A stretch of 64,000 bases of DNA, taken from contig NC_082730.1 of assembly GCF_030144855.1 (NCBI RefSeq), forward strand, positions 1,488,001-1,552,000, read 5' to 3'. A program made the translations under genes and the position numbers. Below are positions 940 to 64,000 of the stretch, piece by piece (positions within the stretch are counted from its first letter, which is position 1; every line of letters starts with the position of its first letter). The DNA is from Hypanus sabinus. Lineage: Eukaryota. The notes below the pieces were generated by a model. That model was not told where the DNA came from. It ran no database searches and worked only from the letters and a program-made list of their open reading frames with translations.

Positions 940-2071
940 AGATAGGACAGCTGTCTTTCAAAGGCAGAGGAGGTGGAGTATGTTTTATGATCATGGTTGC
1001 TGTTGTGTACAGACCTGGTGGTGCTGTCACAGTCCTGCCCACCTGACCCGAAACATTTGCGATTAAGTGTCATCCGTTTTATCTGTCATGGGAGTTTTCA
1101 GACATAATCTTGTTAACGGTGTACATCCCACCTCAGCCTGGTGTCAAACAGGCTTTAGACGAGCTGAGTAATGTAATGAACAGGCATGAAACAGCACACC
1201 CTGATGCATTCCACACTATTATGGGGGATTTTAACTAGGACAGCTTGAAAAAGTCTCTAAATAATTATTACCAACATTTCACTTGTGGAACTAGAGGAAT
1301 CAACACTTTCGACCACCATCAAGAGTGCTTACCATGCTTTCCCACAACCACACTTTGGAAAGTCTGATCACCTGGCTGTACTTCTAATCCCTGAGTATAG
1401 GCAGGGACTGAAGACCGCAGCATAGGAGTGAGGATCAAGGAGGTATGGACAATGGAAGCACAGGAGCGCTTGCAGGACTGCTTTGAATTGGTGAACTAGT
1501 CTGTATTCAGGGATCTGTCTTTGAGACTGAATGAGTATGCCACACTGATTTCATTAAAACCTGTGTGAGCGTGTGCCTACGAGAATATTCTGTATATACC
1601 CAAATCAAAAGCCATGAATGAACCAAGAGGTTCGTAGTCTGCTGAGGGATAAATATATGGAATTCAAGTCTGGTGAACCAGCTATGATTTACGGAGGGCT
1701 ATCTTGAGCAAAGGAACAATTTTGAACGAGGTTGGAGGAGGAATAGGATGCACATCCTCTGGCGGGATTTGCAGTTTTATTTACTTCCTATAACGTTTGC
1801 TGTATGTATTGTGCTGTAGGTTTTCTACAAAGTGAAACCTAACCTTATGAATGGCAGCGATGCTTCACTTCCAGATGAGTTCAACACCTTTTATGCGTGC
1901 TTTGAAAGGGAGAATAAAACTACAGCAATGAAGATTCCTGCAGCATACAGTGACCCGGTGATCTGTGTCTTGGAGGCCTACGTCAGGCTGTCTTTCAAGA
2001 GAGTGACAGGCCCTGATGGAGCACGTGGTAGGGCTCTGAAAACCTGTGCCATCCAACTGGCGGATGTGCTC
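940..2071 (+). mobile_element. Rex1/Babar-type LINE, 5' part (endonuclease to pre-RT), degenerate
   Basis: Degenerate GGVCFMI..KCHPFYL..EFS, GKSDHLAV and ASLPDEFNTFYACFE..GPDG..LKTCA.QLADV (ORF 1832-2077). Confidence 0.75.
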
Positions 2072-2233
2072 TGTTGAGTTCCGTTCATTTGGGCATGTGC
2101 ATTTTCCCTCTTATAGATATGTACATGAGGGAGGTTGGGGGGAGAAAATAGCAGCTGGTGTATTAAATGTGAATGGAGAAAGTAAAGTTGTTAAAATGAA
2201 AGAAAATCTTGTCTTTGTTGTTTGAATGTTATA
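2072..2233 (+). repeat. 5' LTR of the copia element
   Basis: Starts TGTTGAGTTCCGTTCATTTGGG and ends AAAGAAAATCTTGTCTTTGTTGTTTGAATGTTATA; aligns by eye with 11756-11947. Confidence 0.8.
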
Positions 2234-2235
2234 AG

Positions 2236-2255
2236 TGGTAACAGAGGATGGTTTC
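2236..2255 (+). other. Primer-binding site complementary to initiator tRNA-Met
   Basis: TGGTAACAGAGGATGGTTTC, one mismatch to TGGTAGCAGAGGATGGTTTC (complement of the vertebrate tRNA-iMet 3' end), 2 nt after the LTR. Confidence 0.85.
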
Positions 2256-2447
2256 CAACTAAAGGTTCTTGCCAGCGTTCGACAAGAACAAGCCTTACGA
2301 AAGTTGGAAAAATGAAATTGGAATATGGACTGGCAACAACTACAGCAGTGTCTAAGAAGGGTAGTGTTAGCTGCTTTAATGACTATCACCCTGTAGCAGT
2401 CACATCGATGGTGATAAAATGCTTTGAGAGGTTAGTCATGACTAAGA

Positions 2448-3261
2448 TGGCATCTGTTAGTCTTATGAGACCTCGGATCTGCACCTGGAAAGTCTTGCGA
2501 ATGTCGTCTCCGGGGTGCAGGCCTGGGAAAGGTTGTATGAAAGACCGGCAGTTGCCCAAGCAGTAAGTCTCCCCTCTCCACGCCACTGATGTTGACCAAG
2601 GGAGAGGCAAGGGCCGATACAGCTTCAAATGATCACAAGACAAAGGAGCAGAAGTAGGCCATTTGGCCCACTCCACCATGAGCTAAATTATTCTCCCGTC
2701 TAGTTCCAATTTCCAGCTTTTTTCCCATATCCCTTGATATCCTGACTAATCAGTTACCTGTCAATCTCCTCCTTAAAAACCTTCAATGATTGGGCCTCCA
2801 CAGCTGTATGTGGCAACAAATTCCATAAATCCACAACCCGCTGACTAAAAATGATGTCACAGGAGTTGCCAGAGCAAGGTTGAAGTCAACTTCAGACTGC
2901 CTTAGGGACTCCAGCTCTGGATTTGTCCTCAGGGTTTACTCCCGAAGCCTTTCCCTTAAGTGGGTATGGCCGCAAGGCAGCGGAGGTTTGAAATCAGAGT
3001 TTTCCCTCCCTTAGATGGACTGCCTTCCCAGGCTGACGAGCTCTATCTACCCGAAGCACTGGTTTTAAGGCGCCAGGACCTGCCTTCGCCCTTTCTCCTG
3101 TCAGTAGAAATGGTTCTGCTGGGCTTAGAGGCTAAGCCACACAAGAAGGCCAGGAGTTGGACGGTTGTCAGAGGCTATTTGAGGCGCATGCCATGAGGTG
3201 CACTCTTAGGTAGTGGGAGCTTGTCCCCACTACCACTCCTCGGCTTGACAACCTTGGAACC
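2448..3261 (-). mobile_element. Non-coding structured retroposon (RTE-partner-like, ~590 bp), split by a CR1 3' fragment
   Basis: No credible ORF; several inverted repeats. Segment ~2520-2625 is the reverse complement of the 3' part of the SINE at 63148-63420. Confidence 0.6.
2630..2851 (-). mobile_element. CR1 3'-end fragment
   Basis: AGGAGCAGAAGTAGGCCATT..CCCATATCCCTTGAT..GGCCTCCACAGC matches the 3' ends of the other CR1 copies. Confidence 0.75.
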
Positions 3262-3706
3262 GCCATGACTACTAAAACACTCAAAAACTTCTATAGGTAT
3301 TCCGTTGTGAGCATTCTGACAGGCTGCTTCACTGTCTGGTATGGGGGGGGGGGGCAGCTACTGCACAGGACTAAAAGAAGCTATAGAAAATTGTAAAATT
3401 ACTCAGCTCCACTTTGGGTACTAGCCTTCATAGTACCCAAGACATCATCAAGGAGTGGTGCCTCAGGAAGGCTATGTCCATTATTAAGGACCCCCATCAC
3501 CCAGGGCATGCCCTCGTCTCACTGTTACTATCAGGTAGGAGGTACAGAAGCCTGAAGGCACACACTCAGCGATTCAGGAACAGCTTCTTCCCCTCTGCCA
3601 CCCAATTCCTAAATGGATACTGAACCCATGAACACTAACTCACTTATTTTAATTCTGTTTTTGCACTATTTTTAATCTATTCAATATATATATATATATA
3701 TATATA

Positions 3707-5299
3707 CAGTGCCTATAAAAAGTATTCACCCCCATCCCTTGGAAGCTTTCACGTTTTATTGTTTTACAACACTGAATCACAGTGGATTTAATTTATTTTT
3801 TGACACTGATCAATGGAAAAGATTCTTTTGTGAAAATTAATTTCTACAAATTGGTCTAAATTTATTACAATTATTAAACACAAAATAACTGATTGCATAA
3901 TTACTCACCTCCTTCAAGTCAGTATTTAGTAGATGCACCTTTGGTAGCAATTACAGCCTTGAGTCTGTGTGGACAGGTCTCTATCAGCTTTGCACATCTG
4001 GACATCAATTTTTCCCCATTCTTCTTCACACAATTGCTCAAGCTCTGTCAGATTGCGTGGGGATCGTGAGTAAACAGACTTTTCCAAGTCTAGCCACAAA
4101 TTCTTAATTGGATTGAGTTCTGGATTCGGACTTGTCCACTCCAGGACATTAACTTTGTTGTTTTTAAGCCATTCCTGTGTAGCTTTGACTTTATCCTTGG
4201 GTCATTGTCTTACTGGAAAACAAATCTTTCCCCAGTCATAGTTCTCCTGCAGACTGCATCAGGTTTTCCTCCAAGATTTCCCTGTATTCTGCTGCATTCA
4301 TTTTACCCTCTGCCTTCACAAGCCTTCCAGGGCCTGTTGCAGAGAAACACCCCCACAGCATGATGTAGCCACCATCATGCTTCACGGTATTGGTGGTGTG
4401 TTTTTGATGATGGGTGGTGTTTGGCTTACGCCAAACATAGCTTTTAGTCTGATGGCCAAAAAGCTCAATTTTGGTTTCTTCAGACCATAGAACCTTCTTC
4501 CAGCTGACTTCAGAGTTCCCCACATGCCTTCTGGCAAACTCTAGCTGAGATTTTGGTTTCTCTCTTTGACACTCTCCCATAAAGCTGCAACTGGTGAAGT
4601 ACACAGATAACAGTTGATGTATGCAGCCACCGAAGCTTGTAATTTCTCCTGAGTCATTACGGGTCTTGTTGTGCATGTCACTCAGTTTTAGAGGACAGCC
4701 TGAGGTCAGTTTTTGAGGCACATTTACAGCTGTGCCATTTTTTTTTTCCATTTCTTGATGATTGACTTAACTGTACTCCAAGAGATACTCAGTGACTTGG
4801 AAGTTTTGTTGCATCTATCTCCTGATTTGTGCTTTTCAATAACCTTTTCGCAGAGTTGCTTAGAGTGTTCCTTTGTCTTCATGGTGTAGTTTTTGCCAGG
4901 ATACTGACTCACCAGCAGTTGAACCTTCCAGATACAGGTGTATTTTTACTACAATCAGTTGAAACACCTTGACTACACACAGGTTTCCAAAAACAGATCT
5001 CCATTTAACTAATTATGTGACTTCTAAATCTAATTGGCTGCACCCGTGATGATTCGATGTGTCATATTAAAGGGGGGGGGGGGGTGAATACTTACGCAAT
5101 CAAGTATGTGTTTTCTGTTTGTAATTAATTTAGATTGCTTTGCAGAGATCTGTTTTCATTTTGATGCAAAAGAGTCTTTTTTTGTTGATCAGTGTCAAAG
5201 AAAAGCCAAATTAAACCCACTGTGATTCAATGCTATAAAACACGAAAACGGGGGGGGGGGGGGGGGGGAGGGAATACTTTTTATAGGCCATAGGCATTG
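3707..5299 (-). mobile_element. Tc1-like DNA transposon, full length, disrupted transposase
   Basis: Termini CAGTGCCTATAAAAAGTATTC and GAATACTTTTTATAGGCC-ATAGGCATTG, inserted in (TA)n. Transposase pieces [41 protein letters not shown]. Confidence 0.92.
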
Positions 5300-6959
5300 T
5301 ATATACTTACTGTAATTGATTTACTTCTATTTTTCCTTTATGTATTATCATGTATTACATTGGATTGCTGTAGTTAACACATTTCACGACACATGCTGGT
5401 GACAATAAACCTTATTCTGGACTCAGGTTACAGAGTTTGAGAAGAAGACCCTTGCTGTTGTACTGTCGCTTTTGGGATGAGTGAGAGAGATCCCAATGGG
5501 AGTATCAGTGGAAAACTTGAACAATGATGATGGTATTAAAAACGCTAGTAAATGCACTTGACTCAGTTTTTCTGAAGGAAGATAAGGATTGGACTTATGA
5601 GGCATATTCAAACTTGGATAAAATTATAGACAGTTCTACAAATTTGGCTGATTATATTACTGATTTTGAACACACATAAATACAAAATGGAGCATTCTGA
5701 TGCAATATTAGCTTTCGAATTGTTGGATAGTGCACATTGTAGCATTACTTTACATTTGCATCTATGAAATCGGCACTGGGGAGGATTTTTGGAGAAAAGA
5801 CCACCAAGACAATACTTGGAATTAGTGTGAGTCAGGAAACTGCATACTTCACTGAGCAGAAACCAGAGACTAGCAAGTGTAATCCCTAGAGTGACCAGAC
5901 GAGGGCACCATTACCAGGCACAAATTCACTAGACAAGTATTGTAGAACAAAATGCTCTGTTTGACAGAGTACTTCCCACTGAGCAAAAAAACTCTCTACA
6001 ATGTACCAAACAAGTTAAGCTAACTAAAAAAAAACAAATCTGAAGATGTAGAAGACTACCATATAACATCGTTTGTAAAGGAAATATCTACTAATGCAGA
6101 GGCAGAGATTTCGATGATAGAATCCCTAGGATCTACCATTATTGATACAGCATGCATGCACATGGTGTGTGGAGAAAAATACCTTGAAAGCTTCGCACTT
6201 CAATCAGCATTCGACAAACCACAGCTTCTCTCTCTCCCTGGCAAGGGACAGGGAGGTGTCCCTCATTTTCACAGCGAGCAGGAGACATAACAACAAACCG
6301 CTGGTTTACGATCTTAAAAGTCCTTTTCATCGCTTTTTTCAAGTTCTGTGTCCGAAGATCGCAAAGACCTCAGGTCTTCGGGCCCACAGTGAAAGATTTT
6401 CTGGCCTCCTCAACGGCACATGAGTCTCCTCCGTGACACCGATCCTCGATCTGCCCGTTTCCAGAACCCTAAGATCTTAGACTTCCTAACATGATTGAGA
6501 CCCTCAGGCCAAACCACTAACATCTGAGTGCAATGAAACAGTAGCCATAGACCTACATGAACTGGAGCAAGCAGTGTGCTGTCTTCACATCATTGATCAG
6601 TTCACACGTTTTAGTGCCAGTAGCATTGTACTCACAAAGCAACCCTCAGAGAGAGTAAAAACTGCATCCATTCCTGGATAATTGTGCATTGCCCATCTTG
6701 GAAGGTATTCAGTGATAATGGTGGTGAATTTAGTAATGATGAATCCAGAGATATGGTAGAGAAGTATAATATTGAGACAGACAACAGCGGCATATAGTCC
6801 TTGGAGTCATGGACTTCTGGAGCGATGAAATGGAAAAGCTTAATGAAATAACGCTGAAGGTAAAGAAAAGCAATGGCTGTGATTGAAACACAGCTCTGGA
6901 GCATGCACAATGTCCATGGATATAGCCCATATCAACTTGTGTTTGGCCAGAGTCCAACC

Positions 6960-9750
6960 CTTTCCTCCATATCGGGAGTGGTTTAAACTAATATGGCAGG
7001 GGGATGGGGATGATAGAGCTGAGGATTAGCCAGCAGGTTTACAAGTAGATGATGTAATATGTAATATGAATGTAAGGAAGGACAAGACAATGATTGGGCA
7101 AAAGAGTTAAATTGTACCACAGAGGCAAAATTCATAAGGCTGAAGAATGCAAGACTGAAGTGCTGTTTTTAAATGTGCATAGCAGTCAAAATAAGGTGGA
7201 TGAACTTGTGGCACAATTAGAAATTTGTTGGTATGACGTTGTGGGCATCATTGAGTCATGGCTGAAAGGCCACAGTTGGGAGCTGAACATCAAGGGGTAT
7301 ACTTTGTATTGAAAGGACAGGCAGGAAGGCATAGGTGGTGGTGTGGCTCTGTTGGAAAGAGTTGGAATTAAATCTTTAGAAAGTGGTGACATAGGGTCAG
7401 AGAATGTTGAATCTTTGTGGATGGAGTAAAGAAACTGCAAGAGTAAAGAAAACATTATGAGAATCATATGTAGGCCTCCAAATAGTAGCCAAGATGTGGG
7501 GTTGAGATTACAAAGGGAGCTGGAAAGGGCATACATTAAGGGTAATGACACAATTGTAATTGGGGATTTCAATATGCAAGGGCATTGGGAAAATCAGGTC
7601 GGTGTCAGATCACAAGAGAAGGAATTTGTTGAATGCCTACGAGATGGCTTTTTAGAGCAGCTTGTGCTTCAGCCTACTTGGGGAAAGGCAATTTTAGATT
7701 GGGTGTTGTGTAATAACCCAGATCTCATTAGGGAACTTAACATAAAGGAACCCTTAGGAGGCAGTGATCATAATATGATTGAATTCATACTGCAGTTTGA
7801 AAGGGAGAAGCACAAGTCACATGTATCATCACAACTGAATAAAGGGAATTATAGAGGCATGAGAGAGGAGTTTGCCTAGGTGGGTTGGAGGGGGATACTG
7901 GTGGGGATGTCTGTACAGCAGAGATGGTTGAAGTTTTGGGGAATAGTTCACAAAGCGCAGAAGAAGTAGTTCTCAAATTGCAGGGGTGGGCAGCCATGGC
8001 TGACAAGGGAAATTAAGGAATGCAAAAGTGAATGGGAAGTTGGATGATTGGGAAGCTTTTAAAACCCAGCAAAAGGCAACTAAAGAAGCTATAAGAAGGA
8101 AAAGATGAAATATGAGGGCAAACTAGTCAATAATATAAAGCAGGATACTAAAAGTTTTTTCAGTTATATATAAAGAGTAAAAGGGAGGTGAGAGTTGATA
8201 TTGGACTACTGGTAAATGATGCGGGTGAGGTAGTAATGGGGGACAAAGAAATGGCAGATGAACTTAATGGGTACTTTGCATCTGTCTTCACTCTGGAAGA
8301 CATGAGCAAAGTGCCAGAAGTCAGTGAGTGTCAGGGGGCAGGAGTGACTGCCATTGATATTACAAAAGAAAAAGTGTGAGGCAAACTCGAAAGTATTAAG
8401 GTGGATCAGTCACCTGGATGAGATAGAGGTTGCTGAAGAGATAGCAGAAGAATTGGTCATGATCTTTCAAGAATCACTTGATTCTGGCATGGTCCTGGAG
8501 GACTGGAAGATTGCAAATGTCACTCCACTCTTAAGAAGGGAGGAAGGCAAAAGAAAGAAATAATATAGGCCAGTTAGCCTAAGCTCAGTGTTTGGGAAAG
8601 TGTTGGTCCATTATTAAGGATGAGGTTTCGGGGTACTTGGAGATTAATGATAAAATAAATCAAAATCAGCATGGTTTCTGTGAAGGGAAATCTTGCCTGA
8701 CAAATCTGTTAAAATTCTTTGAGGATCTAACAAGCAGGGTGGACAAAGGAGAGGCAGTGAATGTCACTTACTTGGATTTTCAGAAGGCATTCTATAAGGT
8801 GCCACACATGAGGCTGCTTAACAAGATAAAATCCCTTGCGTTACAGGAAAGATATTGGCATGGCTGACAGGCAGGAGGCAGTGAGTTGGAATAAAGAGGC
8901 TTTTTCTGGTTGGCTGCCAGTGATAATTGGGACTGTTACTTTTCACATTGTTTGTCAATGATTTGAATAATGGAATTGATGGCTTTCTGGCAAAGTTTGT
9001 GGATGGTATGAGGATAGGCGGAGGAACAATAGTGCTGACTATTATCCAAATGGGGAGGAGGTTCAAATATCAGAGGTGCAGGGAGACTTGGGAGTCCTCA
9101 TGTAAGACTCCCAGAAGGTTAATTTTACAGGTTGAGTCTGTGGTAAAGAAGGCAAATGCAATGTTGGCATTTATTTCAAAGGGAAAAGAATAAAAAGCAA
9201 GGAGATAATGCTGAGCCTTTATAAGACACTAGTCAGGCTGCACTTGGAGTATTGTCGACAGTTTTGAGCCCATATCTCAGAAAGGATGCGTTGTCATTGG
9301 AGATTCACGAGGATGATTCTGGGAATGATGTTAACATATGAGAGCATTTGGCAGCTTTGAGCCTGTATTCACGGGAATTTAGAAGAATGAGTGAGGATCT
9401 CATTGAAACCTACCGAATTTTGAAAGGACTAGATAGGGTGGATGTGCCGAGGATGTTTCCTATGGTGGGGGTATTCGGAACTAGAGAGCACAGCATCAAA
9501 ATTGAGGGGTGACCCTTTAGAACAGAGGTAATGAGGAGCTTTTTTAGCCAGAGAGTAGTAAATCTGTAGAATGCTCTGCCGCAGACTGCAGTGGAGGCCA
9601 AGTCTGTGGGCATATTTAAGATGGATGCTGATCGTTTCCTGATGAGAAGTTAGGTGTATGGGATTGAGTAGGATCTGGGATCAGCCATGATGGAATGGCA
9701 GAGCAGACTCGATGGGCTGAATGGCCCAGTTCTGTTCCTATGTCTTATGG
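6960..9750 (+). mobile_element. CR1 LINE ORF2, degenerate, inserted in copia pol
   Basis: Endonuclease (IGDFN, GSDHNMI), RT (QHGF, YLDFQKAF) and CR1 3' end. Confidence 0.92.
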
Positions 9751-11755
9751 TGGCACAGACAGTGCTGTAGAGAATTCAGCTGGGGATTCAACAGACTTGC
9801 CTGAACAAAAATGATCACAAGTGCTATGACAATATGGAAGTTTGTCTTAAGACAGGATAAACTGTGAGATTTGTGGACCAAGACACTGGTATCTGATACA
9901 AAGCAGAAGTCTTAGGACGAACAGGCAAAGCCAGTGGGAGAAACTAAAGTTGGTACAACTAGAATTACCTAGAAGCAGTCATGGTCGCTTGTACTACAGG
10001 GCCAGTCAACTCATCATGTGTAGACAGACTTTATATTGAACCAAGTAAAGATCAGGCTGGCCCATATGAGAAATGTGAGGATGAAGATGTCCTAGTAACT
10101 AACGACATATGCCGTTTGAATCTACAACACTGGATGAAATCAGTTGGAGTGTTTGTGGAAGTCAGAAATGTTGGCCAAAAGACAGTGTTTACAAGATGGG
10201 TGTGCACTCGCAAAGAAACCCTGACAGGAATTGTATCAAAAGCAGCTTGGAGGCTAGAGGTTTTGAGGAACTGAAAATAACTCTAAAAAGACCCACCAAC
10301 ATGTGCATCAGAGTCTGTCCAACTACTTCTCACAGTGATATGTCAAAAGCACTGACAACTCCATTGTATGGACATAAAATTTGCATCCTTACAGGGAGTG
10401 GAGCTGTCATGTGACATTTACATTAAACCCCTGCATGAAGCCAGAAGTGAAGGAACACTGTGGAAACTCAAAAAGTGTGTGAAGAGTCTAGCAGGTGCAT
10501 TACTCTACGGTATAAAAAGTCAATGAAATAATGTTGGAAACAGGTGGAAAGATGTCACAAGTGTATCCAGCTGTTTTTTTTAATACAGACAAGATGCAGA
10601 ATTTCATGTGATTGGGGTACTTGCCTGTCTGCATATGAGGAGGTTCACAAAACTTTCCTGTAACAGTTGTCCCTCAGCTAATGTCAGCCTTTCAGGCTGA
10701 ATGCGAGGAACATGTCAGATTCTGCTACATAGGGATAGACATCCTTGCTGTTGATGGAACAGCACAACTGCACCAAAAATCATCAGGAATCTTCAGACAA
10801 TCCACATGGAATCTTCACGTGCCACACAGTGGGATGCACCCCTCAGCAAAGCTGAAGTGGAGCAACTGAGGCCAAAGATAGGTCAGATTCTATGGATGGC
10901 AAGGCAGAGCAGAGCTGACATCATGTTTGATGCCAATTATCTTGGCATCCAGCACAAAAAATGCCGCAGTACAAACTTTAGATGAGGCAAAAAAGATAGT
11001 GTGCAGAATTCAATGTGAAAAAAAATAGTCTTGTAGTTTCAACAGCTTGGAAAAGATAGCTCGCCGAGGCTCGTTATCTTCAGTGATGACTCACATGGTA
11101 ATCTCCCTGATGGAAGTACTGATGGGAGAAGAGAGAAGACTTTCACCTCTCTGTTGGCGATCAAAAAGGATCTGAGGAGTTGTACGGAGTACGCTGCAGG
11201 AGAAACCCTCGCAATGTCTGAAGGTATTGACAATACTGTTTTTCTGGCCAGACTACATTTTGAGCTTCTCCATGGTGATCCAAAGAACGACAGTCTATGG
11301 AGAACTCGTGTCACAAACAGCTGCTCTTTGGTTGATGCCATCAAATCACCAAGACAGTTACAGAGAAGAGGCTTCATCTGGTGATAAGCAGCATCAAAGA
11401 ACTAATCCAAGCACAGAAAATTCATCACGTGCTGTGGTCAACTAGAAAGGAACAACTAGCTGACAGTCTGACAGAGAGGGAGTTTCAGCTCTTGTGCTGC
11501 TAAAGGCCCTTCGTGAAAGCATTTGGTAGCTTATGAACTGTATCAACGTCAAGGGTTAGAACCGATCCCCATATCCTCATAAGCATTTGAGTTGAGATAT
11601 ATATATGTGTAATTTTTGTAGTACTCTGAAAGCATTAATTGAGGGTATAGAGAATCTCAAGAAATTTATTAAGCCTAACAAGAAGAGTTAAAAGTAATAC
11701 AGCTAAACCAATGGACATTTAAGATTATTTTATGTACATGAAGAGGATGGGAGAT

Positions 11756-11947
11756 TGTTGGGTTCTGTTTATTTGGGTAATGTCGACATTTAGTCAGGAT
11801 GTTCACTTTCCTTTGTATGGGCATGTGTGTGAAAGTGGCGGGACGATGGTTGGTAAGAAAATGGCAACCTAGCATACGAAATTTGAACGGAGATAGTTAA
11901 GTTGTCAAAACAAAAGAAAATCTTGCCTTTGTTGTTTGCAAGTTGTA
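11756..11947 (+). repeat. 3' LTR of the copia element, preceded by a polypurine tract
   Basis: GAAGAGGATGGGAGA followed by TGTTGGGTTCTGTTTATTTGGG...AAAGAAAATCTTGCCTTTGTTGTTTGCAAGTTGTA. Confidence 0.8.
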
Positions 11948-11949
11948 CT

Positions 11950-13020
11950 AGATGTCCATGGATTTAGGTTCCACACACAACCTGATGCAGCTACGTACAA
12001 AGGTGATCATCAGAATGTGGGCAACATTAGGTACAGATTTGCTCCCATTGTCCAGGGAGTTGTGTGTTGTGACTCATCTGACCCACTCCATCTTCAATCC
12101 CCAGATGAATCTGAAGATGTCTTGGGTGATTCCCAAGTTGAAGAAGGGGGTAGAAAGGTCACACCTGCACCTAGTACCACAGCCCTGAGAACACCTCATA
12201 CCTGATGTCCAGGTTCTTCCCAATTATCCAGAGGGAGCACCACAATCCCAATTTCTGATCCCCAGCACCTTCACGTAATGGGACCTAACAGTAAAAGGGA
12301 CACTGGGTGGGTGGGGCCAGTTGCCGAAGAGCATGGCTTCCCTGATGCCAACTCAGACTGGTTGCAGATGCTGATCTATCTATGAACTGGCCTCCGACCC
12401 AAGCAGGAGACGATGATATTGTCCATGTACAGGGAGGTTTTCACTTAGGTCCCTCCATTATCCTGCAGCGTCACCCCCTTATGCTCTCGTCCTTCGACAA
12501 AGAGTTCTATACAGCACACAAACAAGACAGGGGAGAGAGGGCAGCACTGCCTGACTCCAGACTTGATGGGGAAGCTGTCTATTTCCCATTCATTGATTTG
12601 GACAGTGGGGAGCTGTTGGATCCCAATTTCTGATTCCCTCCCCAAAACCCAGTTTGGAGAGTCCATCATATACCTGTGTAACATGCTGTCAAAGGCTTTT
12701 TCCTGCTCCCAAGATGACCAGCCAGGCATCCAGTCCTCTGACCTGTGTGGCGGCGATGGTATCTGTGAGCAGCCTGAGGCTGTCAAAGAGCTTCCTGTCA
12801 GGTACAGCATAGGTTTGGTCCAAGTGGGTCACCCATTCCACAACAGACCTGGCTCTGTCAGCAGTGAAATGGGTCTTCCATTCCTGATGTCATCTCTCTC
12901 CCCCTTCTGCTTGTAGACGATGCCCTTCCTCATGCAGTCCGACATGCTGCCAGCCAGAAGCATAACATTGTACACTTCCAGTAGGTCTGGTATGAGGAAA
13001 TGCTTGTTTCAGACCGATCT
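11950..13020 (-). mobile_element. L1/Tx1-type LINE RT fragment
   Basis: ORF 12445-12810 contains QEKAFD...SFPIKSGVRQCCPLSPVLFVCCIE. Confidence 0.75.
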
Positions 13021-35459: not shown

Positions 35460-38400
35460 CATTATGATAGAGCTGAGGATGATCAAGCAGATTTACAAGT
35501 AGATGATGGGTGTAACATGAATGTAATACACGCCAATGATTGGGTACAAATGCAGACAGAGCAAAGTGTTAAGTAGTTCCATAGACAAAATTCAAAGGGC
35601 AAAGAATGCAGGACTGAAGGTACTTTATTTAAATGCGTGTAGCACTTGGAGTAAAGTGGACAAACTCATGGTCAATTAGAGATTGGTAAATATGACGCTG
35701 TGGGCATCACTGAGCTGTGGCTGAAAGGCCTTAACTGGGAGCTTATCAAAGGATACTTTGTACTGGAAGGACAGGCAGGAAAGCATAGGCAGTGGTGTGG
35801 CTCTGTTAGTAAGAGATGGAATTACATCTTTAGAAAGAGGTAACTTAAGGCCAGAGAATGTTGAATCTTTGTGGATGAAGTGAAGAAATTGCAAGGATAA
35901 AAAAAATTATGGGAATCGTATATAGGCCTTCAAATAGTAGCCAAGATGTGACGTTGAGATTGCAAAGGAAACTGGAAAAGGCATGTAATAAGGGTAATGT
36001 CATTATTGTAATGGAGGACTTCAAAATGCAAGGGGAATGGGAAAATCAGATTGGTGTCAGATAGCAAGAGGGAGTTTCTTAAATGCCTACAAGATGGCTT
36101 TTTAGAGCAGTTTGTGCTTGAGCCAGCTCAGGAAAAGGCTATCATAGACGGGTGTTGTGCAATAACCGTGATCTTAGTAGGAGCTTAAAGTAAAGGAACC
36201 CTTAGGAGGCAGTGATCATGATTGAATTCATACTGCAGTTTGAGAGGCAGAAGCATAACTCACATGTATCAGTAACACAATGGAATAAAGGGAATTCAAA
36301 GGCACAAGAGAGGAGCTTGTCCAGGTGGATTGGAGGAGGGTACTGACGAGGATGACCGCAGAGTAGATGGCTGAAGTTTCTTGGAATAGTTCAAAAGGTG
36401 CAGGATAGATACATCCCACAGAGGAAGAAGGTCTCAAAGTGGCAGGGGTAGGCAACCATAGCTGACAGGGAGGTTAAGGCAGCTTAAAAGCCAAGGAAAG
36501 GGCATACAAGGTAGCAAAAGTGAGTGGAAAGTTGGATGATTGGAAAGTTTTATCCAACAAAAGGCAACTAAAAAGGTACAATGGAAAAGATGAAACACGA
36601 GGACAAATTAGTCAGTAATATAAAGAAGGATACCAAAAGCTTTCTCGGTTATATAAAGAGGAAAGGGAGGCGAGAGTTGATTTTGGGCCTCTGGAAAATT
36701 ATGCTGGTGAGGCAGTAATGGGGACCAAGAAATGCCAGAAGAACTTAATGGGTACCTTGCAGCAGTTTTCACTGTGGAAGACACTGGCAGTGTGCTAGAG
36801 TGTCAGGGACCAGGAGTGCCATTGCCATTACAAAGGAAAAAGTGCTAGGCCAAGGTCTTAAGACGGATAAGTCACCTGGACCAGATAGACTACATCCCAG
36901 AGTTCTGAGGGAGGTAACAGATGCACTGGCCATGATCTTTCAAGAATCACTTGATTCTGGCATGGTCCCAAAGGACTGGAAGATTGCAAAGGTCACTCCA
37001 CTCTTTAAGAAGGGAGGAAGGAAAAAGAAAGGAAATTATAGGCCATTTAGCCTAACCTCAGTGGTTGGGAAAGTGTTGGGAGTCTATTAAGGATGAGGTT
37101 TCCGAGTATTCAGAGACTAATGATAAAATAAGTCTAAGTCAGCATGGTTTCGATAAAAGGAAATCTTGCCTGACAAATCTATTAGAGTTCTTTAAGGAAG
37201 TAACAAGCAGGGTAGACAAAGTAGAAGTAGTGGATGTCATTGATTTGGATTTTCAGAAGGCATTTGATAAGGTGCTAGTTAGGTGCATTTGATAAGGTGC
37301 TTGTTAACGACTAGTTAACAAGAAAATCCTATGTCATTACAGGAAAGATACTGCCATGGATAGAGGAATGGCTGACAGGCAGGAGGCAGTGAGTGGGAAT
37401 AAAGAGGGCCTTTAATGGTTGGCTGCCAGTGACGAGGTGTTCCAAGGGTATTGGGACAGCAACTTTTCACATTGTTTGCCAATGATTTAGATAGTGGAAT
37501 TGATGGCTTTGTGGCAAAATTTGCAAATGATACGGAGCTAGGTAGAGGGGTAGATAGTGCTTAACGAAGCACTGAAAATGTGCAATAAAGTGGCATATAT
37601 TATAGTGTTGGGAAATATATGAAAATGCATTTTGGTAAAAAAGAAACAATAGTGCGGATTATTATCTAAATGGGAGCAAATTCAAACATCAGAGACGCAA
37701 AGGGACTTGGGAGTCGACATGCAAGATGATTTCCAGATTAAATTATAGGTTGAGTCTGTGGTACAAAGAGGCAAATGCAATGTTGGCATTCATTTCAAGG
37801 GGAACAGTATATAAAGGCAAGGAGATAATGCTGAAGCTTTAAAAGACACTAGTCTGGCCACCCTTGGAGTATTGTAAGCAGTTTTGGGCACCCTATCTCA
37901 GAAAGGATATGTTATGATTGGAGTGTCTAGAGTAGGTTCATGAAGAGGATTATAGACAATAGACAATAGGTGCAGAAGTAGACCATTCGGCCCCTCGAGT
38001 CTGCACCGCCATTCTGAGATCATGGCTGATCATTCACTATCAATACCCAGTCCCTGCCTTGTCTCCATATCCCTTGATTCCCCTATCCATCAGATATCTA
38101 TCTAGCTCCTTCTTGAAAGCATCCAGAGAATTGGCCTCCACCGTCTTCCGAGGCAGTGCATTCCACACCTCCACAACTCTCTGGGAGAAGAAGCTCTTCC
38201 TCAACTCTGTTTTAAATAACTGACCTCTTATTCTCAATCCATGCCCTCTGGTACTGGACTCTCCCAACATCTGGAACATATTTCCTGCCTCAATCCTATC
38301 AAATCCTTTAATTATCTTAAACGTTTCAATCAGATCCCCTCTCAGTCTCCTCAATTCCAGCGTGTACAAGCCCAATCTCTCTGCGTAAGACGGCCCTGCC

Positions 38401-39325
38401 ATCCCAGGAATCAACCTAGTGAATCTACGCTGCACTTCCTCAATTGCCAGAATGTCCTTCCTTAAACCTGGAGACCAAAATTGTACACAATATTCCAGGT
38501 GTGGTCTCACCAGGGCCCTGTACAAATGCAAAAGGACATCCTTGCTCTTGTACTCAATTCCCCTTGTAACAAAGGCCAACATTCCATTTGCCCTCTTCAC
38601 TGCCTGTTGCACTTGCTCATTCACCTTCATTGACTGGTGAACTGGGACTCCTGGGTCTCTTTGCATTTCTCCCTTATCTAACTCTACACCGTTCAGATAA
38701 TACTCTGCCCTCTTGTTCCTGCTTCCAAAGTGGATAACTTCACATTTATTCACATTGAATGACATCTGCCCAGTATCTGCCCACTCACCCAGCCTATCCA
38801 AGTCTCCCTGTATTCTCCTAACGTCCTCTTCGCATGTCACACTGCCACCCAGTTTAGTATCGTCAGCAAACTTGCTGATATAGTTTTCAATGCCCTCATC
38901 TAAATTCAAGGAAGGAAAGGGTTAACACGAGGTGGTTTCGGCAGCTTAGCCTGTACTCACTGGAATTAGAATGTGTGGGGATCTCATTGAAACCTACCGA
39001 ATGTTAAACGGACTAGATACGGTGAATGTGGAGAGGATGTTTTCTCTGGTGGGGGTATCAAGAAGGCACAACCTGAAAAATTGAGGGGCAAACATTTAGA
39101 AGAGGTAAAGATTGTTTTTCAGCTAGAAAGTGCTTAATCTGTGGAATGCTCTGCCACAGGTTGCAGTGGAGGCCAAGTCCATGGGTATATTTAAAGCATT
39201 GGTCAAGGCAATAAAGGATATTGGGAGAAGGCAGGTGTATGGGGTTGAATGGGATCCAGGATCAGCCATGATGGACTGGTGGAGCAGACTCAATGGGATG
39301 AACGACCTAACTGCTCCTGTCTTAT
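35460..39325 (+). mobile_element. CR1 LINE ORF2 (same subfamily as 6960-9750), interrupted by young CR1 copy B
   Basis: Shares ATGATAGAGCTGAGGAT..CAG.TTTACAAGTAGATGATG; ORFs 36800-37090 and 37065-37292. Confidence 0.9.
37952..38905 (-). mobile_element. Young CR1, short 5'-truncated copy B
   Basis: ORF 38040-38909 nearly identical to 15827-16765 and 57233-58171; CTATTGT tail. Confidence 0.96.
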
Positions 39326-46872: not shown

Positions 46873-46922
46873 CTTATCTGTCTTGTCTTTTGCTTGGGGT
46901 GGGGGGGGGGGGACCCACTCTA

Positions 46923-48552
46923 CAGTGCCTCTAAAAAATATTCAACCCCCTATGAAGTTTTCATGTTTTGTTGTTTTACAGCATTGAATCAAGTGAATTT
47001 AGTTTGGTGCATTTTTTGAGACTGAACAACAGAAAAGGACTCTTTCAAGTAAAAGTGAAAAAATCTCTACAATGTGATCTAAATTAATTATAAATATAAA
47101 ACACAAAATAATTTATTGCATAAATATTCACTCCATTCAAGTCAGTATTTAGTAGATGCACCTATGGCAACAATTACAGCCTTGAGTCTGTGTGGATAGG
47201 TCTCTTATCAGCTTTGCACATCTGTACACTGCAATTTTCCCCATTCTTCTTTACAAAACTGCTCAAGCTCTGTCAGTTTGCACGGGGATTATGAGTGAAC
47301 AGCCCCTTTTCAAGTTCAGCCACAAATTCTCAATTGGATTGAAATTTCGACTCTGACTTGGCCACTCTAGGACATTAACTTTGTTGTTGATAAGCCATTC
47401 CTGTGTATCTTTGACTTTATGCTTGGGGTCATTGTCTTGCTGGAAAACAAATCTCCCAAGTCACAGTTCCCTTGCAGACTGCATCAGGTTTTCCTTCAGG
47501 ATTTCCCTGTATTTTGATGCATTCATTTTACACTCTACCTTTACAAGCCTTTCAGGGCCTACTCCAGAGAAACATCCCCACAGCATGATGCAGCCACCAC
47601 TATGCTTCACGGCAGGGATGGGGTGTTTTTGATGATGTGTGATGTTTGGCTTATGACAAACATAGCATTTAGTCTGATGGTCAAAAAGCTCAAATTTGGG
47701 GTTTCATCAGACCTTTGAACCATCTTCCAGCTGACATCAGAGTCTCTCAAATGCCTTCTGGTAAACTCTAGCTGAGATTTCATGTGAGTTTTTTTCAACA
47801 GTGGCTTTCTCTTTGCCACTCTTCCATAAGCTGACTGGTGAAGCACCCAGGCAACAGCTGTACGTGCAGTCTCTTCCATCTCAGCCACTGAAGCTTGTAA
47901 CTCCTCCAGAGTTGTCATAGGTCTCTTTGTGGCCTCCCTCATTTGTCCCCTTCTTGTAAGGTCACTCAGTTTTTGAGGATGGTCTCCTCGAGGCAAATTT
48001 ACCATTGTGCCATATTCTTTACATTTCTTAATGATTGAGTTAACTGTATTCCAAGAGATATTCAGTGACTTGGAAATTTTCTTGTATCCTCCTCCTGACT
48101 TGTGCTTTTCAATAACCTTTTTGTGGAGTTGCTTGGAGTGTTCTTTTGTCTTCATGGTGTAGATTTTGCCACGGTACTGACTCCCCAGCAGTTGGACCTT
48201 CCAGAATAGTATTTTTACTATTCACTTGAAACACCTTGACTGCATACAGTCTCCAAAAACAGATCTCCATTTAACTGGTTACATGACTCCTAAAACCAAA
48301 TGGCTGTACCAGTGATGATTTGGTGTGTCGTATTAAAGGAGGTGAATACTTATGCAATCAATTATTTTGTGTTTTATATTTGTAATTAGTTTAGATCACT
48401 TTGTGCAGATCTGTTTTCACTTTGACACAAGAGTCTTTTTCTGTTGATCAGTGTCAAAAAAAGCCAAAGTAAATCCACTTTGATTCAAAATTGTAAAACA
48501 ATAAAACATGAAAAATTACTGCAGTGGGGTGAATACTTTTTTATTGGCACTG
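46923..48552 (-). mobile_element. Tc1-like DNA transposon, full length, same family as 3707-5299
   Basis: CAGTGCC...GGCACTG termini with long TIRs; ORF 47607-48155 MKTKEHSKQL..HKSGGGYKKISK..KRKPLL; frameshifted. Confidence 0.93.
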
Positions 48553-53021: not shown

Positions 53022-53175
53022 NNNNNNNNNNNNNNNNNNNNNNNNNNNNNNNNNNNNNNNNNNNNNNNNNNNNNNNNNNNNNNNNNNNNNNNNNNNNNNN
53101 NNNNNNNNNNNNNNNNNNNNNNNNNNNNNNNNNNNNNNNNNNNNNNNNNNNNNNNNNNNNNNNNNNNNNNNNNNN
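53022..53175. other. Assembly gap (154 N)
   Basis: N run. Confidence 1.
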
Positions 53176-63420: not shown

Positions 63421-63559
63421 AAAGATATACTGCAGGTTCTCTCTGTCCCTAATAAGGGAAAAAGAGGTGTCTCAGTTACCACCAGCTCCTCCTCTTAAGT
63501 GACTCCCTAAATTTCAGTGTGGATTTTCTCATTGCAGAGGCACCATTTTGTTACAAATG

Positions 63560-64000
63560 TCTGCTTGTTTTGAAAGAGAGAATAAAACTACAGCTATGAG
63601 GATCCCTGCAGTACCCGGTGATCCTGTGATCCCTGTCTCAGAGGCCACTGTAAGGCTGTCTTTCAAGAGGATGTATCCTCACAAGGTGACAGGCCCTAAT
63701 GGGTTCTGCTGGTAAGGCTCTGAAAACCTGTGCCAACCAACTGACAGGAGTATTCAAAGACATTTTCAATCTCTTACTGCTACAATCAGAAGTTCCCACC
63801 TGCTTCAAAAGGGCAACAATTATACCAGTGCCCAAGAAGAGCAGTGTGAGCTGCCTTAATGACTATCATCCAGTAGCACTCACATCTACCGTGATGAAGT
63901 GCTTTAAGAGGTTGGATGTGGCTAGAATTAACTTATGTCTCAGCGAGGACCTGGACCTACCCGCAATTTGTCTATCACCACAATAGGACTATGGCAGAAG
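63560..64000 (+). mobile_element. Rex1/Babar LINE fragment, running off the window end
   Basis: ORF 63699-63986: [35 protein letters not shown]. Confidence 0.85.

Follow-up and report, generated by a model that had tools for sequence, protein, structure and literature searches.

A very old, dead Ty1/Copia retrotransposon, probably of the GalEa clade, in the genome of the ray Hypanus sabinus

Copia is the scarcest of the retrotransposon superfamilies with long terminal repeats (LTRs) in animals. In a 64,000-nucleotide window of the Hypanus sabinus genome (contig NC_082730.1, positions 1,488,001 to 1,552,000 of the forward strand; all coordinates below are positions in this window), we identified an element at 2072–11947 that is very probably one copy, dead and of great age, of a Ty1/Copia (Pseudoviridae-type) retrotransposon of the GalEa clade, in a vertebrate subgroup resembling the elements Zeco1 and Olco1. 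Two LTRs in direct orientation enclose a primer-binding site (PBS) and a polypurine tract, the structure of a Ty1/Copia element, and the coding remnants between them follow a family of Copia polyproteins. The parts of the element are listed here, with profile positions taken from the family profile described below:

2072–2233, plus strand: 5′ LTR, 162 bp, starting TGTTG and ending TTATA; pairs with 11756–11947
2236–2247, plus strand: PBS TGGTAACAGAGG, 2 bases downstream of the 5′ LTR
2248–2331, plus strand: start of the gag-pol frame, with an ATG at 2248 and the earliest stop at 2260; profile positions 9–28
5424–6032, plus strand: rest of gag; profile positions 26–200
6033–6200, plus strand: N-terminal half of the protease; profile positions 254–307, E = 3.8e-12
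6201–6513, no strand assigned: filler, 313 bp at a site where ~555 bp of family coding sequence is expected
6514–6971, plus strand: integrase catalytic core; profile positions 493–653, E-values of the pieces down to 1.7e-17
9774–11503, plus strand: reverse transcriptase (RT) and RNase H, ending ADSLTE with the stop at 11501–11503; profile positions 852–1391, tblastn E = 6e-61 to the related polyprotein P0006
11740–11754, plus strand: polypurine tract GAAGAGGATGGGAGA, immediately upstream of the 3′ LTR
11756–11947, plus strand: 3′ LTR, 192 bp, starting TGTTG and ending TTGTA; pairs with 2072–2233

The LTRs were recovered as direct repeats, and their end-to-end alignment has ~75–79% identity. 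Within the LTR limits given above, 40 of 162 shared positions differ (29 transitions and 11 transversions), and three gap events take up 30 columns in total. In a self-comparison by blastn, with the whole window as target, the 3′ 92 bp of the LTR alone gave E = 4.6e-15, and neither LTR had a further match across the 64 kb beyond its partner. The pairing of the LTRs, proposed in a first-pass annotation made from the sequence alone, was thus borne out, as were the PBS and polypurine tract named with it. Within 2236–2255, the bases that follow the 12-base PBS (GATGGTTTC) also look complementary to the 3′ region of the vertebrate initiator tRNA-Met; they overlap the ATG at 2248. The PBS itself is identical at 10 of its 12 bases to the sequence published for metazoan GalEa elements, TGGTAGCAGAGC. 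That sequence pairs with the tRNA-Met 3′ end (PMC3587641; PMC5445492 supplementary file 5) and is present in all six of the metazoan GalEa elements in a published feature table (Donnart et al. 2017, PMC5445492 supplementary file 5).

The Kimura two-parameter distance between the LTRs is 0.31, and because of this we regard the insertion as old, in agreement with the earlier claim. Using T = K/2r and rates of 1–2.5e-9 per site per year, which are not calibrated for this lineage, we estimate that the insertion would be roughly 60–160 million years old, and older at slower rates; the figure means only "very old".

Relatives of the element were sought with phmmer, using a 115-aa RNase H piece as the query against a library of 1.84 billion representatives (cut-off E ≤ 1e-3). 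The search matched 28 proteins, among them polyproteins of 1,273–1,423 aa. A word-indexed protein search with the same RNase H piece gave no candidate, owing to its length window. In the long relatives P0006 (1,423 aa) and P0016 (1,273 aa), rve comes before RVT_2, the domain order of Copia, and the same arrangement is found in every RT-bearing relative recovered; in the relatives that the window pieces match at E = 6e-61, Pfam finds RVT_2 at E about 1e-32. When P0006 was compared with the window by tblastn, colinear matches were found in gag (5536–5988), protease (6039–6194), integrase (6514–6971) and RT/RNase H (9846–11500), the last with E = 6e-61. A second search revealed a large family of polyproteins of ~1,400 aa, each a single open reading frame, on contigs of ~4.3–5 kb. 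We constructed a family profile from 81 aligned proteins (1,409 positions) and searched it against all stop-free pieces of 2000–12100. The profile places 22 window pieces in strict order, with the following correspondence:

2272–2331: profile positions 9–28
5415–5877: profile positions 26–200
6033–6200: profile positions 254–307
6514–6971: profile positions 493–653
9900–11479: profile positions 852–1391

All of the protein strings quoted in the first-pass annotation were found among these remnants, colinear with the Copia polyprotein family. Family residues 1–27, in many of the polyproteins, align at 2248–2328, so that the start codon lies directly after the PBS; residue 27 onward aligns from 5418. 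A decayed CCHC knuckle at ~5950–5988 matches family residues ~200–244 by tblastn (55–64% identity), with two of its positions turned into stop codons. The protease motif DTAC lies at 6144–6155 and matches 82 family members. In the integrase, SDNGGEF is readable and the catalytic residues D (6550), D (6714) and E (6820) give D(54)D(35)E spacing, bar two small frame slips. The RT/RNase H remnant is 50–56% identical to its best relatives over 427 of 540 columns.

By profile position, the order of the pol domains is protease (254–307), integrase (493–653) and RT/RNase H (852–1391). This order bears on whether a Gypsy, BEL/Pao or endogenous-retrovirus relic has been mistaken for Copia, a reading that could point to the lack of any significant Pfam RVT_2 or rve match in the window pieces themselves. 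However, every RT-bearing relative has RVT_2 with rve upstream, and in the window the integrase core at 6514–6971 precedes the RT, which runs from 9774 onward, just as the first-pass annotation had stated. Both the order of the domains and the family to which the relatives belong refute a Gypsy, BEL/Pao or endogenous-retrovirus identity, and we give it a negligible probability. The assignment to the Copia superfamily made at the outset is supported, the closest full-length relatives having rve upstream of RVT_2.

Assignment to a clade draws on published motif tables. Cico1, Zeco1 and Olco1 share an LTR start of TGTtaa and the motifs CCHC, DTAC and KARLVA; D(54)D(35)E is listed for Cico1 and Zeco1, with no integrase spacing entered for Olco1; and Zeco1 and Olco1 further have DIKSAF/DIKAAF, HVDD, TRPDI/SRPDV, SDAS and ADCLTK (PMC5445492 supplementary file 5). 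The counterparts in the window are LTR starts of TGTTGA and TGTTGG, a CCHC remnant, DTAC, D(54)D(35)E, DIKFAS, SRADI, SDDS and ADSLTE. Of the GalEa protein motifs, CCHC, DT[G/A]C, D(49-54)D(35)E, D[I/V]KxA[F/Y], [T/S]RPD[I/V], SDAS and ADxxTK can be followed in the window, several of them only as recognisable remnants; KARLVA and [Y/H]xDD, which also belong to the set, are lost to frameshifts. All seven Zeco1/Olco1 protein motifs are present in 11 proteins of the window element's own tree clade, and a family member from Ciona intestinalis has six of the eight Cico1 motifs.

For phylogenetic analysis, window residues were assigned to their columns of the profile; each break was left as a gap and no residue was supplied. 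The FastTree tree, which has 126 rows, puts the window element in a clade of 24 leaves (support 1.0) that also holds the named teleost proteins, those of Coilia, Xiphophorus and Sardina. A fast IQ-TREE search places it inside a 28-leaf clade with SH-aLRT support of 100, its position within that clade not being settled. Hosts named for the wider family comprise tunicates, Saccoglossus, Holothuria, bivalves, a limpet and teleosts, and this range of tunicates, hemichordate, echinoderm, bivalves and teleosts fits that published for GalEa. Of the 1,191 database relatives of the closest subgroup, the best 120 include none with a cartilaginous fish as its named source; this comparison covers proteins of at least 777 aa only and is weak evidence.

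The nearest known relatives of the window element are GalEa elements of teleosts, Zeco1 of Danio rerio and Olco1 of Oryzias latipes. Like them, it has a short LTR starting TGTT, an adjoining tRNA-Met PBS (10 of 12 bases), CCHC, DTAC and D(54)D(35)E, together with recognisable DIKxAF, xRPDx, SDxS and ADxxTx motifs; its tree position is among teleost members of the subgroup; and its family shares with them a single gag-pol frame, which in the window is too broken to read. Unlike them, it resides in a cartilaginous fish and is a dead copy that has lost ~1.1 kb and changes frame at least 15 times; its LTR ends in TA rather than CA, its PBS has two mismatches, it has no visible 5-bp target-site duplication, and its HVDD and KARLVA motifs are destroyed. 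The crustacean elements GalEa1 (Eumunida annulosa) and CoRex1/2 (Rimicaris exoculata), which have LTRs of 124–217 bp, the common PBS and lengths of 4.5–4.95 kb (PMC3587641), agree with it in overall architecture and length class. However, crustacean GalEa elements have a DSGC or DTGC protease, DVKAAY and YVDD/YMDD, whereas DTAC and DIKxAF characterise the window element and its relatives, with HVDD in the relatives.

We considered whether the relic could derive from another marine metazoan Copia clade (Hydra, CoMol or CoMar). Such an origin is helped by the lack of named reference or outgroup sequences in the trees, by the wide occurrence of Met-type PBSs in Copia, and by the presence of Hydra-clade elements in teleosts too (PMC11889832). 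Against it stand the agreement of the motif set with the published Zeco1/Olco1 rows, the 10 PBS bases shared with GalEa, and the occurrence of the family in animals from which the Hydra clade is unreported: a published study did not find it in bivalves (PMC6238403), and tunicates, hemichordates and echinoderms are not among the hosts listed for it (PMC11889832). We consider this origin improbable, and the motifs, PBS and tree together support the GalEa assignment that had been proposed.

The element is interrupted by younger mobile elements, and their positions bear on whether 2072–11947 is one copy at all:

2326–2331 and 5418–5423, plus strand: direct repeat TGGACT, bracketing the nested long interspersed nuclear element (LINE)
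2332–5417, plus strand: nested 5′-truncated LINE, inserted in gag and split by a Tc1-like transposon
3707–5299, within the 3′ region of that LINE: Tc1-like DNA transposon, TA-flanked, with inverted ends of ~200 bp
7010–9748, plus strand: nested L2-like LINE, with endonuclease and RT domains (Pfam Exo_endo_phos_2 and RVT_1)

Two of the three intervals that had been marked for excision correspond to these insertions: 2332–5423 is borne out as the LINE at 2332–5417 carrying the Tc1-like transposon, and 6960–9750 as the L2-like LINE at 7010–9748. Gag is exactly continuous across the first LINE, with family residue 27 on each side, and the canonical 3′ end of the LINE falls exactly on the gag junction. 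Other copies of this LINE lie at 60.4–62.2 kb (minus strand) and 63.5–64.0 kb (plus strand), and the copy at ~60.4–62.2 kb shows the 3′ region without interruption. The TGGACT repeat is a target-site duplication or else reflects microhomology with the tail of the LINE. The L2-like LINE shares its first base with a copy at 35464; this common first base suggests that the two best L2-like copies have full-length 5′ ends.

Given this arrangement, we weighed the alternative that a 5′ fragment (LTR, PBS and gag start within a LINE) lies by chance beside a separate, 5′-truncated Copia copy. The case for chance juxtaposition is that the LINE to the left of 2072 and the LINE from 2332 are contiguous in LINE coordinates bar 56 bp, and that the element as a whole has no flanking target-site duplication. 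However, the gag parts meet at the same family residue (27|27) with TGGACT at both junctions, the nested LINE stops at its canonical 3′ end on the junction, and the only match of each LTR in the window is the other LTR. Chance juxtaposition is therefore very unlikely, and we retain a single Copia copy with LINEs inserted into it.

The LINE to the left of the 5′ LTR (1618–2071) stops 56 bp short of the coordinate at which the nested LINE starts (reference copy 63540–63930), and 2072–2331 therefore resembles a 260-bp island within one LINE. The left piece is the more diverged, being 67–75% similar to other copies as compared with 78–87% for the nested piece (2332–2450). This gap in divergence would fit two independent LINE events. 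If there were two events, the near-coincidence of LINE coordinates is unexplained; we estimate its chance at roughly a few percent. Twin priming, template switching, a long target duplication and recombination of two Copia copies were each considered as a source of the LINE contiguity, and the arrangements that they predict were not seen.

The third interval marked for excision, 6185–6515, was not borne out as a nested insertion, since its removal leaves profile positions 308–492 missing. These ~185 aa (~555 bp), comprising the protease C-terminus and the integrase HHCC zinc finger, have no counterpart in the window. The filler at 6201–6513 has no similarity to the family by tblastn or hidden Markov model searches, even at permissive settings; Rfam and tRNA scans of it were blank, and it has no second copy within the window. 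Given the missing profile positions and the lack of a family, Rfam, tRNA or second-copy match, we conclude that 6201–6513 is a deletion holding 313 bp of filler rather than a simple nested insertion. Profile positions 654–851, the integrase C-terminus (~190 aa, ~570 bp), are also absent, and the non-LINE remnant beside the LINE at 7010–9748 amounts to ~38 bp on one side and ~25 bp on the other. The mapped pieces contain at least 15 changes of frame, besides at least 6 additional stop-separated joins. In all, ~3.7 kb of native element DNA is left and ~1.1 kb has been lost, a sum that fits the 4.5–4.95 kb of metazoan GalEa elements (PMC3587641; PMC5445492). The description of the element as nearly complete was thus overstated: deletions have removed about a quarter of the coding region, and the remainder is full of frameshifts and stops. 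The copy retains no coding capacity, and nothing suggests a function for the host.

Several observations weigh against reading 2072–11947 as a single GalEa copy. Pfam detected no significant domain in the 15 stop-free Copia pieces from the window, a result that also bears out the near-invisibility in routine tracks remarked on at first pass. Both LTRs terminate TG…TA, where TG…CA is expected; published GalEa LTRs are short and bordered 5′-TGT…CA-3′ (PMC5445492). Two of the 12 PBS positions deviate from a sequence described as strictly conserved; two mismatches would be expected for decay this deep, yet they are still mismatches. A 5-bp target-site duplication is not visible, the flanks reading TGCTC and CTAGA, and age or flank rearrangement may be the cause. 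Past the 3′ LTR, the right flank is not a continuation of the LINE adjoining the 5′ LTR, and this reflects either rearranged flanks or slightly misplaced element ends. HVDD and KARLVA are unreadable in the window, with local frameshifts at these sites. Lastly, the trees contain no named GalEa1, Zeco1 or Hydra references and no outgroup clades, and the clade call therefore rests on the published motif tables and host lists; the published criterion for clade membership is grouping with reference elements at a bootstrap of at least 70 (PMC11889832).

If the living element behaved as its family suggests, it would have been transcribed from the 5′ LTR and would have encoded one gag-pol polyprotein of ~1,400 aa, comprising a CCHC nucleocapsid, a DTAC aspartic protease, an HHCC/DD35E integrase, an HVDD RT and an RNase H. 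Reverse transcription would have been primed at the PBS by the 3′ end of initiator tRNA-Met, plus-strand synthesis would have started at the polypurine tract, and the element's own integrase would have carried out integration. The later events are shown by the copy itself. After insertion, the 5′-truncated LINE entered gag, with the Tc1-like transposon arriving later in its 3′ region, and the L2-like LINE entered the integrase C-terminal region, at a site now short of ~0.55 kb of element sequence. Another ~0.55 kb, spanning the protease C-terminus and the integrase zinc finger, was lost and 313 bp now stand in its place, and the frame changes, at least 15 of them, and many stops built up.

Copia elements have already been published from chondrichthyans: Scyliorhinus canicula has 719 copies in 8 clusters, Carcharodon carcharias also has them, and few chondrichthyan species do in all (PMC11889832); Copia has also been reported from the whale shark (PMC8455134). 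These elements belong to the same superfamily and the same vertebrate class as the window element, and given that Copia is already known from a few chondrichthyans, the window element adds a member to a known kind. It is a further example and an ordinary genomic fossil, of modest interest. The published chondrichthyan surveys used LTRharvest and aimed at little-damaged copies, whereas the window copy is ancient and damaged; the authors themselves note that ancient remnants were possibly missed by this approach (PMC11889832). Surveys based on LTR similarity miss old nested remnants such as this one.

In the published host list, the vertebrates given for GalEa are teleosts. It is conceivable, though we hold it doubtful, that this relic is the first clade-level record of GalEa in a batoid and possibly in Chondrichthyes, nested among teleost elements and tens or hundreds of millions of years old. 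If so, a Zeco1/Olco1-like lineage would have persisted vertically since early jawed vertebrates, or else it would have been exchanged horizontally between bony and cartilaginous fishes at an ancient date. A GalEa-type fossil in a ray is a data point on the duration of the lineage in jawed vertebrates. For annotation, the gain is that ~3.7 kb of otherwise unclassified sequence is explained and that a relative chronology of four nested mobile-element insertions is obtained. No bearing on host gene function is apparent.

The neighbourhood of the element is a retroelement mosaic. A LINE reverse-transcriptase fragment lies at 12445–12810 (minus strand), just downstream of the 3′ LTR. L2-like LINE copies are found at 7010–9748, 35464–39325, 16.4–18.6 kb (minus strand) and 55.4–58.3 kb (plus strand), and the copy nested in the Copia element lacks ~1 kb that is found at 37923–38937. 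The window has a run of N at 53022–53175. The Tc1-like transposon at 3707–5299 is ~80% identical to a second copy at 46921–48507; its transposase reading frame is decayed (4236–4912, minus strand), and Pfam gave no transposase call for it.

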